NCBI GenBank assembly: GCA_003427395.1
Contig: BFEA01000026.1
Location: 5,383,225 to 5,447,224, forward strand
Length of the DNA stretch: 64,000 nt
Origin: Chara braunii
Taxonomy: Eukaryota > Plantae > Charophyceae
Direction of reading: 5' to 3'
The notes under the pieces were generated by a model. The model was given only the letters and a program-made list of their open reading frames with translations, had not been told where the DNA came from and did not search any database. Below, piece by piece: positions 15,436 to 38,405 of the stretch; position 1 is the first letter of the stretch, and every line of letters begins with the position of its first letter. Made by a program: the position numbers and the translations under genes.

Positions 15436-16557
15436 CTCGTTCCACTACTCGCCATCTGCCATAAACAGCGGTGAGACTTGGCGAGGCCGAAGAGTCAATT
15501 TTTTTAGCGGAAAACAGCGTTTGGTTCCATTACATCGCCGCCACGCGCACTGTGGTTGCTGTCCCGGGCTGCGCGCCGGATTGTGGCGGATGGCGGACTA
15601 ATGGAACGGTGGCGGTGTTCGGCCGCATGTCATGCACAAACCTCACGGCCCTCGCGACGTTCCGTTCGTCGTACGCCGTAAGAGTTGTTAGGGGTGTGGC
15701 CGAGGATTTTTGGCCGTGGGGTTTGAGTCACCCGGTCGAAACGGGGGACTCTTGCTTCAACCCGAGGTGCCGGGACGAGGGGTTGAGTTGTCGCCGAAGG
15801 CGGATAACGAGAGAACGGGGCAGCGATACCCCCGGGGCAGGTTCAGACTTCGTTGTCAGACTCGTCGAGTCCGTGCGGTCGACACAGCACGGGCTCGCCC
15901 GGGGTAAGACAGGGCGATGGGACCCAGGTTCGAAAACGGGCGGGGAGCACCCGCGTTGCGGGAGAGTTCGGGGAATCGAGTAGCCCCTTCATACCCCAGG
16001 ACCAGTCGTCGCCACGAGCACGAGTCTCCCTGGCGACACCAGTGATAGTTAAACTGCGGTCGCTAGGTGCTGTGCACAACAGACGAGGGCAACACCGTGA
16101 GGTCTGTGTACTACGATAAGATTAAAGGCGGAGAGGCAAATCGCTCGATCAACACAAACCCACTCCCGCGTATGTGGCATGCGTGGGTCGGGTTATAAAG
16201 ATGGATTGGCTCAATGCACCACAGCAGGTTCCGCATGTCCGCATCAAAGTATATGCCATTGTTATCTGCGATCGGAAAAGGTGCCATCGTGCTGCGACGT
16301 CCTGGGACAAGGTTCGAGCTCGGGCCACGGCCTGCGCTTCCGTTCGTCAGGACGAAACCTGTCTCCATGCGAAGATCAACGAATACCGCTGAAGACGGAT
16401 GTGCCCAACTCCCTTTCCCCATCTCTTCTTTGTGTCCTTACCCGAAACGCGGTGTCAGGCACTGGTGGTGGATATAGAGAGGTCGACCGCCTCACGAAAA
16501 CGCTGGTGACCGATCTCTTCGGAAGTATCCACCTCCTCTTGGGGTCTCGACCAGCGC

Positions 16558-16647
<90 letters not shown>

Positions 16648-16756
16648 NNNNNNNNNNNNNNNNNNNNNNNNNNNNNNNNNNNNNNNNNNNNNNNNNNNNN
16701 NNNNNNNNNNNNNNNNNNNNNNNNNNNNNNNNNNNNNNNNNNNNNNNNNNNNNNNN

Positions 16757-19055: not shown

Positions 19056-20234
19056 CGCCACACCTATCTCCAAAACAGCGATTTGGAGAGAAGTGGCATC
19101 ACCACACCAACTCCTGAAAATCGCAGTCAGAACGAATTTGGAGAGCGGTCAGAATTCGGTTCTCGGGAGTGCTCTCGAACTTTGTGGATCGCCCCGCCTG
19201 CAAAGCACCGGATTTGAGGAGTGGTCCGAGGCTCCTCCGATTTCGGCCCCAAACTGGAGAGTGCGCCTCGGCCGACAACCATCTGTTGCCACCGTTTTGT
19301 CTGGGTTTGCCACACCACTCTCAAAATGTGAAAAAGACAAAAATGTGGCGGGTGCATCTGGCCATGTTCTAGCGGGAAGTTCATTCTCATTTTGCACATT
19401 TCGAGAGTGGTGTGGCGAGGGTCTGCGCTGTCCAAAAAACGTCGGGCCTCGTCTGACGAATTGGAGACTGCCGCCTTGGAGAGCGCAGTGTGGCGACGAG
19501 CCCTCTGGAAACGTTTTTTCACATCTCCCGCGTTCGGGAGTGCTCCCGAACTTTTTTGCGTTTTCGGGATAGGTGTGGCNNNNNNNNNNNNNNNNNNNNN
19601 NNNNNNNNNNNNNNNNNNNNNNNNNNNNNNNNNNNNNNNNNNNNNNNNNNNNNNNNNNNNNNNNNNNNNNNNNNNNNNNNNNNNNNNNNNNNNNNNNNNN
19701 NNNNNNNNNNNNNNNNNNNNNNNNNNNNNNNNNNNNNNNNNNNNNNNNNNNNNNNNNNNNNNNNNNNNNNNNNNNNNNNNNNNNNNNNNNNNNNNNNNNN
19801 NNNNNNNNNNNNNNNNNNNNNNNNNNNNNNNNNNNNNNNNNNNNNNNNNNNNNNNNNNNNNNNNNNNNNNNNNNNNNNNNNNNNNNNNNNNNNNNNNNNN
19901 NNNNNNNNNNNNNNNNNNNNNNNNNNNNNNNNNNNNNNNNNNNNNNNNNNNNNNNNNNNNNNNNNNNNNNNNNNNNNNNNNNNNNNNNNNNNNNNNNNNN
20001 NNNNNNNNNNNNNNNNNNNNNNNNNNNNNNNNNNNNNNNNNNNNNNNNNNNNNNNNNNNNNNNNNNNNNNNNNNNNNNNNNNNNNNNNNNNNNNNNNNNN
20101 NNNNNNNNNNNNNNNNNNNNNNNNNNNNNNNNNNNNNNNNNNNNNNNNNNNNNNNNNNNNNNNNNNNNNNNNNNNNNNNNNNNNNNNNNNNNNNNNNNNN
20201 NNNNNNNNNNNNNNNNNNNNNNNNNNNNNNNNNN

Positions 20235-21013: not shown

Positions 21014-21093
21014 CACTGGGAGTCTCCCGTCACACCGATGTCGGAGCTTTTGATAATCCTCGATTTCCCCTGAACATAACTCACCGTGATCAT

Positions 21094-21762
21094 GGGCCTC
21101 GCTGCACTACTCTCGAAATGTGCAAAACGAGAGTGAATCTTCTGCTAGAATATGGAAAGATACACGGCCATGATTTTTGCCTTTTGTGCATTTCAAGAGT
21201 AGTGCAGGGAGGCCCCATAGCTGAAAAGAGTGCAAAATTCCAGGCCAGATAAGGGGCCTCGCTGCACTACTCTCGAAATGTGCAAAACGAGAGTGAATCT
21301 TCTGCTAGAATATGGAAAGATACACGGCCATGATTTTTGCCTTTTGTGCATTTCAAGAGTAGTGCAGGGAGGCCCCATAGCTGAAAAGAGTGCAAAATTC
21401 CAGGCCAGATAAGGGGCCTCGCTGCACTACTCTCCACATGCACAAAAGACAAAAAATATGGCGGTGCATCTTTCCATGTTCTAGGAGAAGATTCTTTCTC
21501 ATTTTGCACATTTGAAGAGTAATGCAGTGAGGCCCAAGGACAGCTGTAATGGCCATGCCTTCTTTTTTTTTTTTTTTTAATTAATGGCCATGCCTTCCAC
21601 CCAGCAGCCGCCACTCTTTTCCGAAAAAATGACCACGGGCCTCCCTGCACTACTCTCCAAACGCGCAAACAAAATGAGAATGCATCGTCCTCTAGATCAT
21701 GGAAAGATACACCGCCATATTTTTTGTCGCTTGGGCATATGGAGAGTAGTGCAGCCAGGCCC
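21094..21762. mobile_element. Cluster of four ~122-bp TIR-bounded MITE units (the first two lie in an exact 160-bp tandem duplication)
   Basis: GGGCCTCGCTGCACTACTCT...AGAGTAGTGCAGGGAGGCCC; the first unit is flanked by CAT/CAT. Another copy at 37424-37545. Confidence 0.8.
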
Positions 21763-23606: not shown

Positions 23607-25494
23607 GGGCCTCGCTGCACTACTCTAGACTCTCGAAGTTTGAGGGTGGGTCTTCGCCGCACTTACTCCTGATTGGGAAACTCTTGAAACCCGATCGAGA
23701 GCTGTCAGATGCCACGCTACAACGCCACTCTCGAAACGTCCAGAGTCTCCCGCCTGCAAAAACCGAATTTGCAAGTGTCCTGGGGAGTTGCCCGCCCAGA
23801 GGCTCGTTTCGAGAGTGGACCTCCTGTCCCGGCGGTTTATCGGAGACAAGTCCAATGACACAGGCAATCAAATAGTTAGGCAACCAAGAGATGACCAATG
23901 ACTTGAGACCAAATGGAAATAGAGAGGAGTAGGGAGAGGACGGACGACTGGACAACTTTTGATAACCTTGCTCCAAGGCTGCAGGGCCTGTGGCACCAGA
24001 TGGACCACCTGCATCAGTTGAGGAACGCTGTCCCGTGCCAATGGACAGAGATATTGAGGGCGGGACTTGTGCCGGTAAAAGGGATGTGGTACAAGCAAGC
24101 ACAGCAAACACAGCAGGAACACGCAACTCTAATTTGGAGGATAGAAGACTATTCAGATCACGTGGAGATTCCCGCTACTTGTTGGAGAATGCAAGCCGGC
24201 CCACAGACTTTGGGAGAGCCGCTGCAACTCTGCGAAGAACAACTTCTCCTCCCGCCTGTTGACCAACTGGAACAGAAAGAATGTTACAGGCCATTCTTCA
24301 CTCAGCTTTCTGCATTTGAACTGCCGGTTGATCCCAGAGACTGGGCGTGGAAGCATCCGATGAAGAATGAATTGGTGGCCCTGCCAGAGTACTCTACAAA
24401 AATGGGATACCGGCTAATGACACAGCGACTGGACGTCAACTGGACTGTGGCAAGGAGATGGATGGCCACCGGGTGGATCGATGATTCCCTAACAAGGTTG
24501 GCAGCAGCTCTTCCGCCTTTCTGGAAACTTCTGATGGATTTAGTGGTTAGTAAGCACGCGAGCTTGCTCTGGCTTCTGATGCACCTGGCGCTCCCGGTTA
24601 ATACTTGGTGCGCCAAAAGAACTGCAAAGGCAGTGGCAGAGTGTCAAATATGTCCAGGAACCAGAATGGAAGACGTGCAACACTTCGCGCTACAATGTGA
24701 ATTGTCAAGATCCTTTTGGGAATGGTGGAGACAATCGGGTGTCCCGATACCGGGTGCGGACACCCGCTGGGGGGAATAATTTTATCCTCCTGGGAGTGGC
24801 GGCAAGGAAGACTGCAAAGCAGGTGCGGCTCGCTCACGCAGAGGAGACAATTCGAGGTGCCATTCTGTGGACCCTCTGGAACCTGAGAAACGCCAGAGTA
24901 CGGAAATGTGAACACATTACACCGCCAATGATAAGAGTTGAAGTGAAATACGCTATAAAACAGGCAATCTCTGCGGACTGGGAATACCGGGTCCAAAAAA
25001 AGGGTTTTTCAGCACAGGCGATTAAGTGGTTTTGGAGCAGATGGGACGCCTTCTCGGGTCTGGCTACAGTGGAAGTTAGGCCGGAAGGCCCGCCGATGTT
25101 GAGATTTTCGCCCTTTTTCTTACAATAGTATCTTGCAATGTGCTGTAGGCATAGCCGCTATCTCATTTTTTGGGGCTTGGTGCTGTCGTGAGGTTGATAG
25201 TTTTTAGTTAGTAGCCACATTGGAAGGTTGGAATTGCCAATAGGTAAGTTGGTAGATGACCTTTGTATCGATAGGCAGCTAGTTCAGTCACTGTTCTTTT
25301 CACTGGATTGGTTTTGCTTGAGATTGAATTTGTTGGTTGTTTGACTTTCATTTCATGATGAACGGTCCAGCTGGGTCTTTCACTGTGGCAGGGATGGGTT
25401 TGGCCGGGAGTGCCTTGCCCAGCCCGACATGCCACGGCATATGTGTAAGGGACGCCGGACCCGATTTCCGGCAATGGAAAGAGAGATCGTCATC

Positions 25495-25528
<34 letters not shown>

Positions 25529-35140: not shown

Positions 35141-37763
35141 TTTACTCACTCTGTTATCTCAAAGAAACTTCTCAAAAAAATTCCCCTGAAGCACAGTGAA
35201 AAGGTATGAATACCTGTCCAACAACCTAAAACCACTTCAAATGCATTTCCGATGTGAAGCACCAGACCTTAAAATCAGCTATCACTACGGGATTGTAATC
35301 TTAAGCGTCTAAATTGACAGCACCCTTAAACTGTCACCAATTCAAAATCGATGTTCGAACAAATCTGTACCAGGCCTATGAGTCCAGCCTATGCAGGTGG
35401 GCAGAAAAAGGAAAAACGCCATTTGAAATTATAGTAGTTTTGGAATGACTAAACCGTAATGAACAAAGCCAAATAACAGATTTTGAGCTAGAGAGGAATC
35501 TGGAAAGTTCCAGAAAAGGATTCGCCCAACGAGCAGATCAATAAATTCCCACCGAAGGAAGACAGCACCAATACTGGCCCGACAGAGCAGCTAGTAGCCG
35601 TGGGGAGCCTGGGTTGCCGTGACGAGGTTTCCCACCTTGCACCCTTGGACCTCTGAAGGAACTGCCATCTCCCAGGCACCCTAGATCTCAATGGGTACAA
35701 CCCAAGTTTGCTCTCCTGCCAGCTAAATGTTATTCAGTCATGCCCTAGTAGGGCAGCAACGTTCCCACAACTAGTAGCTCTCCCACCACCTCCAATAGCT
35801 CCGTTGCCTTCTACGAACAACCCCCAACCTTCCACATTTACCAACCAAAAGCAAAGCCGAGAACCCATAGCGAAGATTCCTTGAAATAGCCTCTAGATCC
35901 ATGGAGGGTGATAGACAGACCAACTAAGAAGGGGGCAACGTGTGTAGCGGGGCACAACACAATCTAAGAGCAGAGCGATCCAGAGAAGACCAGCAGGATA
36001 CTATTACCGCCGCAGCCCATGGGGCACGGAGTTGTGGGAAAGTGAAAACAAGGTAATACAACAAGAGAGCTTGGGTGACGGGGCACAGAGTTGAGAAAAG
36101 TGAAAGAATCTAGACCATCAGATGCATCAACTATGTGGAAAGTAGGATGAGAATCCCACAACTATCTGCAGAGACCAACGAGGCAGAGTAACAGGGCACA
36201 AAGATGTAAAAGGTGAATGAATCTAGTCTGATGAGAGCGTCAGATGCATCGAATGCGTGAATGGCAGGATGAAAGTTCCGCGGCAGTCTGCCGAAGCCTA
36301 CAAAGCATAACTGTGGCTCCAATCAAGAGAGTTCAAGTAAGCAAGGCACCAAGCAATGAAAACTGCTTCCCACAGACACGAAACATGCATGCAGGGAAGG
36401 CGAGAGCGAGGAAATTCTTAGATTAGGTGAGATTAGGTGAGATAAAAGTTACGAGCAATTTTTGGAATTACTACGTTATATGAGGGCTCAGATATGGGAA
36501 TAGGGATGGAGGGTTGCCTGAACCCAACCATTTAAACCCGACTCAGAGTATGAGTAAATAACGGCATTACACGAGGGCTGCCTACGAGAATAATGAAGGG
36601 GGAATGCACCAAACACAGAATACAACCAGATACGGAGTACTAGTGACTAAATACGATCAAGGTTGCCAGTAACACCAAAGCACATAGCAGGAAGAGCTTC
36701 AAAGAGGGGGAAAGTATTTCCAAATATTATTGTGTACGTCCGTCATGAAGTAAGCCACTCGTAGGGAGTATTTAGCAAAGAATATGGCTAGGTTAATGCA
36801 CTCTAAATATTTCGTGCAAGAGAATGTCTTGGTTAATGCTCAGCGCCCTTGATCCCAACGGAGACGCTCCCACCACCATTAGAGGAACTCCCACTCCCAT
36901 TGGTGGAGCCGCCCCCCGTCGAGCTTCAGGTCTTCACGCTCCCAGTCAAGATAGTCAACAGTAGTTCTCATGTGCTCCTCTTAACACTAGTCCCAACACG
37001 ATCGGCTGCCCACCCACTGCCTCCAGAGGTGCCGCTGTTGGATGAGCCCGCTGTCCCGTACTAGACTCTCTCTCCCTTCGTCGTGTTCACACTGCAACGA
37101 GTTTTGTTACTTGAATCTTGTAGACTGTCTGTTGTAGGAGGAACTGGAATCGCCCTGCTCCCTGGTATTCCACAGGGAGACACAGTCCCTTGTCAGAGTT
37201 GAGGGCGATGGCCGAACCTAGGGATCGCCGAAGAAAACATCGTTCCGCCCCACAACCCGAATCCCACACCTCGATGCCGACGCAGAGTGCTGCCGTCTCT
37301 GGAGAGCGAGTACGCCTGGTAGCGCAGCGCTTCATCGGAGCGCTACCCCAAGGGAATTTTTTTCCCTTCCGGGGGTGGGAGATTTTTCAAGCCATATTTA
37401 ATGCATACAATTTTGCATATGTAGGGCCTCTCTCCACTACTCTGGACATGCACAAAAGACAAAAATCATGGAGGTGTATCTTCCCATGTTCTAGCGGAAG
37501 ATTCACTCTCGTTTGGCGCCTTTCGAGAGCAGTGGAGCGAGGCCCACATATAAGAGGACAACAAACGAGGGACTGTGACAAGCTGTTTCGTCGGAGTTTT
37601 TTTTTTTTTTTTTCAAATCAATCTTTATTGACATTGAGTCGGGAAACGGGCCCACCGACTCATATATATATATATCGTCACAAATATATCGTCAAATAGA
37701 ACTGCCCGGTAAACCGTAGGCAGAGAGGGAGAAGGAGAAGAGGACAACAAACGAGGGGCTGTG

Positions 37764-37828
37764 ACAAACTGTTCTGTTTCGTCGGAGTTTCACCGACTCA
37801 TCAGGAGGCTGAACCCTCAACAGTCTGC
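37764..37828 (-). ncRNA. Type III hammerhead ribozyme (5-nt duplication in stem III)
   Basis: Minus strand: GCAGACTG-TT-GAGGgttcagCCTC-CTGATGA-GTCGGtgaaactCCGAC-GAAA-CAG. Confidence 0.85.
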
Positions 37829-37934
37829 AGAATCCCCTCACTGATTATATATATATATATATATATCGTCAAATAGAACTGCTCGGAAAACCGTAGGCAG
37901 AGAGGGAGAAGAGGAAAACAAACGAGGGGCTGTG

Positions 37935-37994
37935 ACAAACTGTTTCGTCGGAGTTTCACCGACTCATCAGGAGGCTGAACCCTCAACAGTCTGT
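37935..37994 (-). ncRNA. Type III hammerhead ribozyme
   Basis: Minus strand: ACAGACTG-TT-GAGGgttcagCCTC-CTGATGA-GTCGGtgaaactCCGAC-GAAA-CAGTTTGT. All three stems pair; GUU triplet. Confidence 0.9.
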
Positions 37995-38405
37995 AGAATC
38001 CCCTCACTGATTACACTGTAAGTGATAATACCAAATTTGAAATAAAAATCAACTACTAAAAATAAATAATAATGATAAAAATTAGGGGAAAAGTTGGGAA
38101 AACAAACGAGAATGAAATTATTGAGTGGGGCAAGCACGTTTTGACACGGCTATCTTTGGTGATTTTTCGTTTTTTTTTGGCTATGACAAATGCCATGAAA
38201 ATTTATACATCTGTCGCTTACATAATAGAGAATTTACAAATAAAATTTGAAAAGATAATAATTTTTTTCATGCCCCGAAATGAAAGAAAAACAAGAAGTC
38301 AGAAGTGAGAAAAAACAATTAGCGAGTGGGCAAGCAAGTTTTGACACCACCATCTTTGCCGATTTTTCATGTTTTTTGGGCTGAACAGAATGGCTTCAAA
38401 CTTAA

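Follow-up and report, generated by a model that had tools for sequence, protein, structure and literature searches.

The locus lies at positions 37550-38032 on the minus strand of a 64-kb window of the Chara braunii genome, the window being the whole stretch of DNA that was analysed. A 166-nt period at 37684-38013 (1.9 copies, 91% matches) was reported by TRF. On the minus strand this corresponds to two periods of ~166 nt (38013-37684) carrying one type III hammerhead each and followed by a broken third copy. The array units are joined by (TA)n, as the first-pass annotation had described, and beyond the (TA)n tract of the array no (TA)n run of five or more repeats is found elsewhere in the window. 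Coordinates of all features are collected in Table 1.

Table 1. Features of the array, related features of the window, and copies at the comparison loci L007 and L014 (5' starts in unit coordinates)
Feature	Position	Strand	Remarks
Copy 1, most complete	37866..38032	(-)	5' leader (at least from 38029-38032), hammerhead, 3' end ..TTTGACGA
Hammerhead 1, type III, canonical core	37935..37994	(-)	Rfam RF00008 45.8 bits; h1=4, h2=5, h3=9
(TA)10-11 tract separating copies 1 and 2	37846..37865	(-)	Tail or target microsatellite
Copy 2	37689..37845	(-)	5'-truncated at ATCAG, without leader; from alignments with copy 1 and L014
Hammerhead 2	37771..37826	(-)	Core intact; 5-nt insertion CAGAA in 3' strand of helix III
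9-nt fragment TTGTGACGA	37675..37683	(-)	(TA)n on both sides; variant 3' end ..TTTGTGACGA
Copy 3	37552..37662	(-)	Begins inside CUGAUGA right after (TA)6; 3'-truncated at 37552
MITE-like repeat adjoining copy 3	37424..37546	(-)	Outside the element; further copies at 21093-21536 and 19313-19420
Related type III hammerhead	1281..1340	(+)	GUC site, different context; Rfam RF00008 38.9 bits
Truncated copy	L007:15902		Start 75
Stacked truncated copies	L007:8183, L007:8086	(-)	Starts 75 and 82; (TA)10 between
Stacked truncated copies	L014:5080, L014:5218		Starts 46 and ~118
Truncated copy	L014:7300	(-)	Start ~126; then a hammerhead-bearing copy identical to copy 1 of the window

No LTR, PBS or ORF with homologues is present in the array. 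One 68-aa ORF runs across a unit; as it has no homologue in the protein collection searched, the ORFs of the array are considered spurious. The only repeat in the array is the 166-nt period itself, and the LTR pair of a plant retrozyme (~350 bp, with a hammerhead in each) is therefore absent. Neither a tRNA-Met primer binding site nor a polypurine tract occurs in or beside the array, and no coding sequence was found beside it.

The profile search proposed in the first-pass annotation was run with Rfam RF00008 (Hammerhead_3). Hammerhead 1 was matched at 37937-37992(-) with 45.8 bits (E 7.8e-7 for the whole window) and hammerhead 2 at 37771-37826(-) with 37.0 bits (E 2.5e-4 for the whole window), both scores being below the gathering score of 48.5. 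In hammerhead 1, stem I (GAGG/CCUC), stem II (GUCGG/CCGAC) and a 9-bp helix III can be read directly, and helix III is extended by GAGGGG/CCCCUC (38000-38005 paired with 37924-37929 in unit 1). Copy 1 belongs to type III: it has the conserved core (CUGANGA..GAAA) and a U-H cleavage site, helices I and II are closed, and helix III is open. The minimum-energy fold of unit 1 is the hammerhead three-way junction (z -3.4, 0 of 200 shuffles), and the number of chance matches expected for the 29-nt core string is 0 (100 shuffles). Cleavage is predicted at GUU, between 37985 and 37984. A GUU site falls within the NUH rule and is usually cut more slowly than GUC. The initial description is supported in that the mobile element is non-coding, bears a type III hammerhead and has neither LTR nor PBS nor ORF.

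Two full units, each with a complete hammerhead core, had been described. The core and the GUU site are confirmed for both; an intact fold is not confirmed for the second. Contiguous helix III of hammerhead 2 measures 4 bp only, and in the minimum-energy fold of unit 2 the core CUG pairs with CAG, by which the core is sequestered. Hammerhead 2 is probably misfolded by its 5-nt insertion, which makes double cutting at the array unlikely; by these predicted folds, copy 1 looks to be the one array copy able to self-cleave. As a circle, the 166-nt monomer folds with 54% pairing (z -3.1), a structure dominated by the hammerhead; a rod-like viroid fold is absent from this circle and from the longer element (z -1.0).

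A 4-bp loop-loop kiss (UUCA/UGAA) had also been suggested. It is possible on paper and was rejected for want of covariation support, both loops resembling the generic type III consensus of Rfam. The hammerhead copy at 1283 has an altered loop 2 without a compensating change, and one phage hammerhead has the loop 2 of the array with a different loop 1. Metagenome and viral contigs contained the 29-nt core in two phage-like contigs only. Stem II and loop 2 of these are in common with the array unit, the type III hammerheads are otherwise unrelated, and the contigs are therefore no relatives of the Chara element.

The hammerhead at 1281..1340 (+) aligns with unit 1 over 88 nt at 85% identity. Its stem II has a G-U pair at the base, its loop 2 is altered, and its minimum-energy fold is not a hammerhead (z 0.1). 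Homology of the upstream flank of copy 1 to 1340-1500 was rejected, the best local alignment being 13 nt and within shuffle range. A 9-nt PBS-like string, TGGTATCAG, is found near this hammerhead copy only (at 1389) and is absent from the array. A Pol III or tRNA-derived head was likewise discarded, as ARAGORN finds no tRNA-like gene and the box resemblance is weak. With no such gene, and with a (TA)n tail while the LINEs of the window end in poly(A), the element is not classed as a SINE.

For comparison we used 12 Chara braunii loci from assembly GCA_003427395.1, a sample chosen beside Penelope-like genes and not random. The element occurs at four sites besides the window, as single or stacked copies, giving 11-12 sampled copies at 5 sites. 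Copy 1 is 100% identical to L014:7126-7232(-) over at least 107 nt, including 19-22 nt upstream of the 166-nt period, so that its homology with L014 runs upstream beyond the period. Judged by these alignments, 166 nt is not a natural unit of the element, contrary to the monomer of that length first proposed. Since the element begins 19 nt or more upstream of the period, unit 2 is a copy that has lost its 5' part. The 5' boundary itself is imprecise: the 19-22 nt leader is solid, and ~30 nt further out are weakly similar.

The remaining copies differ in origin as well as in length. Copy 2 has a 6-nt insertion in its CT-rich part when aligned with copy 1, and in its 3' half it shows no substitution against L007:15902, on another scaffold, versus three against the neighbouring copy 1. 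The 9-nt fragment is read as an extreme 5'-truncated copy of the ..TTTGTGACGA 3'-end subfamily, and this variant end is also found at L007:8087-8114(-), L014:5243-5266(+) and L014:7261-7276(-). The partial third unit reported earlier is present in corrected form: copy 3 keeps the 3' part of the ribozyme alone, carries a CAGCTTG variant common to L014:5080-5182, and is interrupted at 37600-37652 by a LINE-like fragment of ~55 nt that ends in poly(A). Its missing 3' end is not explained by target-primed insertion alone, and a later deletion or rearrangement is therefore assumed. The leader of copy 1 lies outside the period, copy 2 is 5'-truncated, and by their markers copy 3 and the 9-nt fragment belong to other subfamilies. 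We therefore consider the locus likely to be a stack of at least four separate target-primed insertions of one non-coding, non-LTR family into a single (TA)n tract. The tandem-monomer organisation of the first-pass annotation is replaced by unequal, independently inserted copies of different subfamilies.

Local tandem duplication of one inserted copy, by slippage or unequal exchange at (TA)n, would instead make the ribozymes decaying relics with no present role. Microsatellites promote slippage, the GUU site is common to units 1 and 2, and unit 2 contains two short internal duplications. We nevertheless hold this explanation to be improbable, because copy 1 reaches beyond the period, copy 2 is nearer to L007:15902 than to copy 1, and other subfamily markers are found in copy 3 and the 9-nt fragment. 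Moreover, the intact GUU variant is unchanged at two loci (the window and L014), and its recurrence at L014 with the same leader marks it as a trait of the subfamily, not as a mutation that arose locally.

The insertion-stack reading agrees with the copies at the other loci. All of those sampled have the 3' end ..GACGA or ..GATGA followed by (TA)n, and both single and stacked 5'-truncated copies without ribozymes occur. Among 11 copies there are at least 8 different 5' starts, none of them at the cleavage site. In the window and loci together (317 kb of non-N sequence), 9 of the 11 (TA) runs of at least six repeats adjoin a copy. One insertion lies inside a foldback host repeat with (TA)n on both sides, and a sister copy of this repeat has no insertion. 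At least 29 nt upstream of the cleavage site are retained in full-length copies, and the templates are therefore taken to be uncut, religated or nicked-but-paired RNAs.

It had been asked of the element whether its copies are terminal repeats of a coding element; the sampled copies (12 loci, 5 sites) are free-standing. A fragment of the terminal repeat (pLTR) of a coding retroelement, be it an autonomous Penelope-like element or another kind, is the least probable origin we weighed, and a very improbable one. Hammerhead-bearing Penelope-like elements do exist in the Chara genome and in the window, and Penelope-like elements form partial tandems and favour microsatellites (PMC8557442). However, no coding sequence adjoins the array, and the unit does not resemble the 3' regions of the Penelope-like element of the window or of 12 relatives, all of one family. 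These relatives have type I minimal ribozymes and ends outside microsatellites.

The RT ORF of the window has its best homologues all among Chara braunii proteins. Its Penelope-like element had been named as a possible helper, a role for which nothing speaks here: it has no sequence, ribozyme type or target in common with the unit, its ribozyme is type I minimal, and its 3' end lies outside microsatellites. No autonomous partner of the element was found in the window and sampled loci. The most natural candidate for the source of the reverse transcriptase would be a microsatellite-targeting Penelope-like element.

The proposed element would be ~165-195 nt long plus a (TA)n tail, with all insertions of the stack made into one (TA)n tract, each probably by target-primed reverse transcription. 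The cDNA would begin at the fixed 3' end (..GGGCAGTTCTATTTG(TG)ACGA, then UA repeats), paired with a nicked (TA)n target, and cDNA synthesis would often halt early, leaving copies with truncated 5' ends. Successive insertions into one tract would build head-to-tail piles that resemble a tandem repeat. In full-length copies the type III hammerhead would lie ~50-75 nt from the 5' end, and its unusually long helix III (9 bp and a 6-bp extension) would hold the two cleavage products together. Cutting may serve to process read-through or multi-copy transcripts, possibly with religation afterwards.

A true retrozyme would go further: both ribozymes of one transcript would cut, the ~166-nt RNA between the cuts would close into a circle, a helper RT would copy this circle, and the tandem units would come from rolling-circle or multi-round cDNA synthesis. 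Two hammerheads in the same orientation 166 nt apart suit this model, as does a long helix III that would keep the ends of the cut monomer together. A cDNA primed and ending in the UA tract of the circle would yield just what copy 2 shows, (TA)n and then ATCAG, and the sequence upstream of the cleavage site is kept in full-length copies. We still regard the model as unlikely. The stack has mixed subfamilies and unequal lengths, the leader of copy 1 is outside the period, and 5'-truncated, ribozyme-free copies are single and stacked at other loci. Two cuts are unlikely at the array with hammerhead 2 probably misfolded, and the circular monomer is not rod-like. Equally doubtful is its wider form, a type III non-LTR retrozyme of a streptophyte alga, in which transcripts of stacked copies would be cut, the ends held by helix III ligated, and a circle or nicked duplex copied into (TA)n.

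The family behind the insertion stack is a non-LTR retroelement without coding sequence that targets microsatellites and carries a type III hammerhead, and it is a variant of known ribozyme-bearing retroelements. Non-autonomous Penelope-like elements of the Chlamys/Naiad type, such as MRC1 of Chlamydomonas, often show 5' truncation and form head-to-tail partial tandems (Craig et al. 2021, PMC8557442). Their strong microsatellite bias is for (TA)n in Naiads and (CA)n in Chlamys, and some Chara braunii Chlamys subclades bear hammerheads (PMC8557442). The Chara family resembles them in being non-coding and 5'-truncated, in its partial tandems and in its microsatellite bias; unlike them, it has no adjacent inverted copy in the array. 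It also differs from Penelope-like elements, with their minimal type I ribozymes, in that its type III hammerhead is complete and helix III long, and its 3' end has no similarity to the one Chara Penelope-like family sampled.

Metazoan non-LTR retrozymes have type I hammerheads, true multimers and highly self-paired circular RNAs shown experimentally (PMC7229834; bioRxiv 10.64898/2026.07.22.740005), and a dependence on Penelope-like elements has been proposed for them (Cervera and de la Pena 2020, PMC7229834; Li et al. 2026, bioRxiv 10.64898/2026.07.22.740005), as it is here for the Chara family. Short non-coding units of 150-450 nt without LTR, PBS or PPT, arranged head-to-tail with one hammerhead per unit, are common to both; the Chara family is of type III, with unequal stacked copies and a poorly self-paired fold. 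Angiosperm LTR retrozymes have LTRs, a PBS, a PPT, a unit of 600-1000 nt and a 4-bp TSD site (Cervera et al. 2016, PMC4918200). With these the Chara family shares a type III hammerhead matching the Rfam Hammerhead_3 consensus including the loops, its non-coding and non-autonomous nature and the green lineage, whereas LTRs, PBS, PPT and a 600-1000-nt unit are lacking and the target is (TA)n. The distinction originally drawn from the LTR retrozymes of angiosperms and from the type I tandem retrozymes of metazoans holds.

Among ribozyme-processed non-LTR retrotransposons, the HDV-like ribozymes of R2, RTE and L1Tc (cited in PMC7761336) cut at their own 5' edge, and the whole ribozyme stays in the element RNA. 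The likeness to the Chara family is a self-cleaving RNA (here predicted) near the 5' end of a target-primed element, plausibly freeing the RNA from read-through transcripts. In contrast to these ribozymes, a type III hammerhead cuts internally, and the element RNA would therefore lose the 5' strand of helix III if the ends neither remained paired nor were joined again.

Eukaryotic type III hammerheads have been tied to angiosperm LTR retrozymes and viroid-like relatives, and short non-LTR ribozyme elements to animal type I hammerheads and Penelope-like elements (PMC7761336, PMC7229834). The hammerhead of the Chara family is of the plant/viroid type, which is uncommon for an element of its kind. 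No description of a Chara type III hammerhead family inserting into (TA)n was found in the literature searched. The point of interest is the family more than the array, which adds that apparent tandems can be stacks of insertions. A young charophyte family that joins a type III hammerhead to non-LTR microsatellite insertion links both pictures, and it bears on the origin of plant hammerhead RNAs. Should the doubtful type III retrozyme reading be true, type III hammerhead circular-RNA retroelements would be present in the sister lineage of land plants, and angiosperm retrozymes and hammerhead viroids would gain a candidate ancestor.

The array on the minus strand (38013-37552) reads as two periods of about 166 nt followed by a broken third, and the short tandem repeat claimed here by the first-pass annotation was recovered by Tandem Repeats Finder (37684-38013, period 166, 1.9 copies, 91% matches). 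Reverse transcriptase (RT) homologues were used as handles to obtain 12 Chara braunii loci of GCA_003427395.1 (L005-L016; 291 kb including 36 kb N). BLAST of unit 1 against these loci located the element at four sites besides the window, a small sample of copies drawn from transposon-rich neighbourhoods.

Element copies at the comparison loci L007 and L014, and the Penelope-like element of the window (start positions count along the ~166-nt period)
Feature	Position	Strand	Details
Single copy	L007:15902-15975	+	starts at unit position 75; (TA)12 on 5' side, (TA)6 on 3' side
Stacked pair	L007:8183-8107 and 8086-8018	-	starts at positions 75 and 82; (TA)10 between
Copy	L014:5080-5182	+	starts at position 46; 5' flank not TA
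Copy	L014:7300-7261	-	starts at about position 126, then (TA)4
Chlamys-type Penelope-like element	8149-10830	+	CSC-motif ORF, RT ORF, hammerhead pair

All copies have (TA)n directly after one of three terminal sequences, ..TTTGACGA, ..TTTGTGACGA or ..TTTGTGATGA; the 3' end is thus common, while at least 8 different 5' starts are found among 11 copies. The first copy in L014 is followed by a TA tract and a second copy starting at about position 118, and some 30 nt past the minus-strand copy and its (TA)4 there is another copy, with a hammerhead, that is cut off by an assembly gap. In the window and loci together (317 kb non-N), 9 of the 11 (TA) runs of at least 6 repeats directly abut a copy, and of the whole 64 kb the array alone contains (TA)n of at least 5 repeats, while (CT)n and (CA)n are common in the window. 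Such 5' truncation with a fixed 3' anchor is the pattern that target-primed reverse transcription leaves when it inserts into microsatellites. The single L007 copy sits inside a foldback-type host repeat (L007:15378-16394, 8183-8499 and 16362-16680; inverted arms of ~380 bp, central (TA)n), which is a recurrent landing site of the element; in the sister repeat at 16658 the (TA)n is unoccupied. The density of about 5 sites per 317 kb of this transposon-rich sample would, if representative, scale up very roughly to a genome-wide total of order 10^4.

The hammerhead copy in L014 matches window copy 1 (37866-38032(-)) at 100% identity across at least 107 nt. This identity reaches 19-22 nt beyond the 5' edge of the 166-nt period (ATTATCACTTACAGTGT), and for a further ~30 nt the similarity is weak. 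The element therefore exceeds the period in length, and copy 2 (37689-37845(-)), which begins at ATCAG immediately 3' of (TA)11, is a 5'-truncated copy. In its 3' half copy 2 has no substitutions and one 6-nt indel relative to L007:15902 on another scaffold, against three substitutions relative to the neighbouring copy 1. Copy 3 (37552-37662(-)) and L014:5080 carry CAGCTTG where copies 1 and 2 have CAGTTTG, and TTGTGACGA, between copies 2 and 3 with TA repeats on both sides, is a 9-nt copy of the other subfamily's 3' end. A tandem-monomer organisation had been proposed; with unequal copies, mixed subfamilies and a copy 1 reaching beyond the period, the pattern is not that of a multimer of one monomer. 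Repeated target-primed insertions at one (TA)n tract would instead give such head-to-tail piles.

Copy 3 starts inside CUGAUGA, immediately 3' of (TA)6, and is split at 37600-37652(-) by a fragment of ~55 nt (stem-loop, AATAAA, A17) similar to Chara LINE 3' ends (compare 25449-25500(+) and L013:13436-13456), with which it has a stem / CCCG.TTT loop / stem motif in common. The fragment's stem GTCGG/CCGAC overlaps the 5' strand of hammerhead stem II, so its 5' junction looks microhomology-mediated. Copy 3 ends at 37552, adjoining a MITE-like repeat beyond which no continuation of the unit was found. This repeat (~125-160 nt, terminal inverted repeats) occurs at 21094-21434 and 37424-37546, at the former as a tandem of 160-nt units without mismatch (2.1 copies, 100% matches).

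At the Rfam gathering threshold the sole matches in the whole window were two U6 snRNA genes 2.8 kb apart, 47567-47677(-) and 50395-50505(-) (72.6 and 65.0 bits), both with small internal insertions relative to the model. Hammerhead_3 (RF00008) matches were obtained with E-value thresholds, and all score below the gathering score of 48.5: unit 1 at 37937-37992(-) (45.8 bits, whole-window E 7.8e-7), unit 2 at 37771-37826(-) (37.0 bits, E 2.5e-4) and a dispersed copy at 1283-1338(+) (38.9 bits, E 6.8e-5). The window has three matches (up to 2 mismatches; 0 expected) to the 29-nt string that runs from CUGAUGA through GAAAC. Exactly this string, through stem II and loop 2, is also present in intergenic type III hammerheads just upstream of a gene start in two phage-like metagenome contigs (L001:8195-8223(-) and L002:3461-3489(+); L003 and L004 are their IMG/VR entries), where helices I and III are unrelated.

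A complete hammerhead had been described for each full unit. This holds for unit 1, where all parts were found (stem I GAGG/CCUC, stem II GUCGG/CCGAC, the GAGGGG/CCCCUC extension, site GUU), helix III has 9 bp, the predicted cut lies between 37985 and 37984, and the minimum-energy fold is a three-way junction (z -3.4; 0/200 shuffles). In unit 2, helix III carries 5 inserted nt on its 3' strand; the unit's minimum-energy fold pairs the core CUG with CAG after GAAA, thereby sequestering the core, and hammerhead 2 is probably misfolded. At the dispersed copy the site is GUC, the basal pair of stem II is G-U and loop 2 is altered, and the predicted fold is not a hammerhead (z 0.1). About 50 nt 3' of this copy, TGGTATCAG at 1389-1397(+) is a 9-nt match to the plant tRNA-iMet primer binding site, and just upstream the assembly has an 890-nt gap; the site may have an LTR-retrozyme-like layout. 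For a core-like string at 85-117(+) (CUGAUGA, 6-bp stem, GAAA) no legal helix III or cleavage site could be fitted and no Rfam match was found at E <=1.

The sampled copies demonstrate the 3' anchor, the truncations and the link to (TA)n; that the ribozyme is active and has a role is our inference. The intact GUU variant is unchanged at two loci (window copy 1 and L014) and is therefore part of a recently copied lineage; GUU is tolerated, or else copying can do without the cut. No sampled copy begins at the cleavage site, and the leader upstream of it is kept in full-length copies; the templates of these were thus uncut or religated, or had been cut while helix III (9+6 bp) kept the pieces together. 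The geometry of the array allows a 166-nt RNA to be released by two cuts, but this needs hammerhead 2, which is probably misfolded. The predicted fold of a 166-nt circle is 54% paired and hammerhead-dominated, the two units of a dimer transcript are predicted to be able to exchange helix III strands, and the longer element showed no unusual fold beyond the ribozyme.

The RT-like ORF of the window's Penelope-like element (8567-10003) has a weak RVT_1 match, with the CSC motif in the ORF just upstream. Its homologues number 54; every named one is a hypothetical protein of Chara braunii (27-58% identity), some of these carry CCHC knuckles, and one unnamed Logan match has a GIY-YIG domain. The element fits the Chlamys-type Penelope-like elements known from Chara braunii, among them a type with a hammerhead at its 3' end and an ORF with CCHC (PMC8557442). 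Its own hammerheads are minimal type I, a head-to-tail pair at 10736-10823; decayed versions persist 0.8-1.2 kb 3' of the ORF in the relatives from L005, L011 and L013, and homology stops ~15-20 nt past the ribozyme, in no microsatellite. No unit-like sequence was found in this element or its relatives. With type I ribozymes, 3' ends outside microsatellites and no similarity to the unit, the family is an unlikely helper, although its RT had been suggested as such. Since Naiads are biased towards (TA)n (Chlamys towards (CA)n) and non-autonomous Chlamys elements insert head-to-tail (Craig et al., PMC8557442), our best guess for the helper would be a different Penelope-like family.

In the literature surveyed, type III hammerheads go with viroid-like RNAs and with the LTR retrozymes of angiosperms, type I with animal non-LTR retrozymes, now argued to come from Penelope-like pLTRs, and minimal type I with Penelope-like elements. 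The Chara element shares type III with the angiosperm retrozymes but is non-LTR and microsatellite-targeting, and differs from the animal ones in being type III; no description of an element combining these three features was found there for Chara or any alga. Tandem hammerheads in Selaginella and Chlamydomonas have been mentioned without details (De la Pena, PMC5680766). What the array locus itself contributes is evidence that such hammerhead tandems are insertion stacks.
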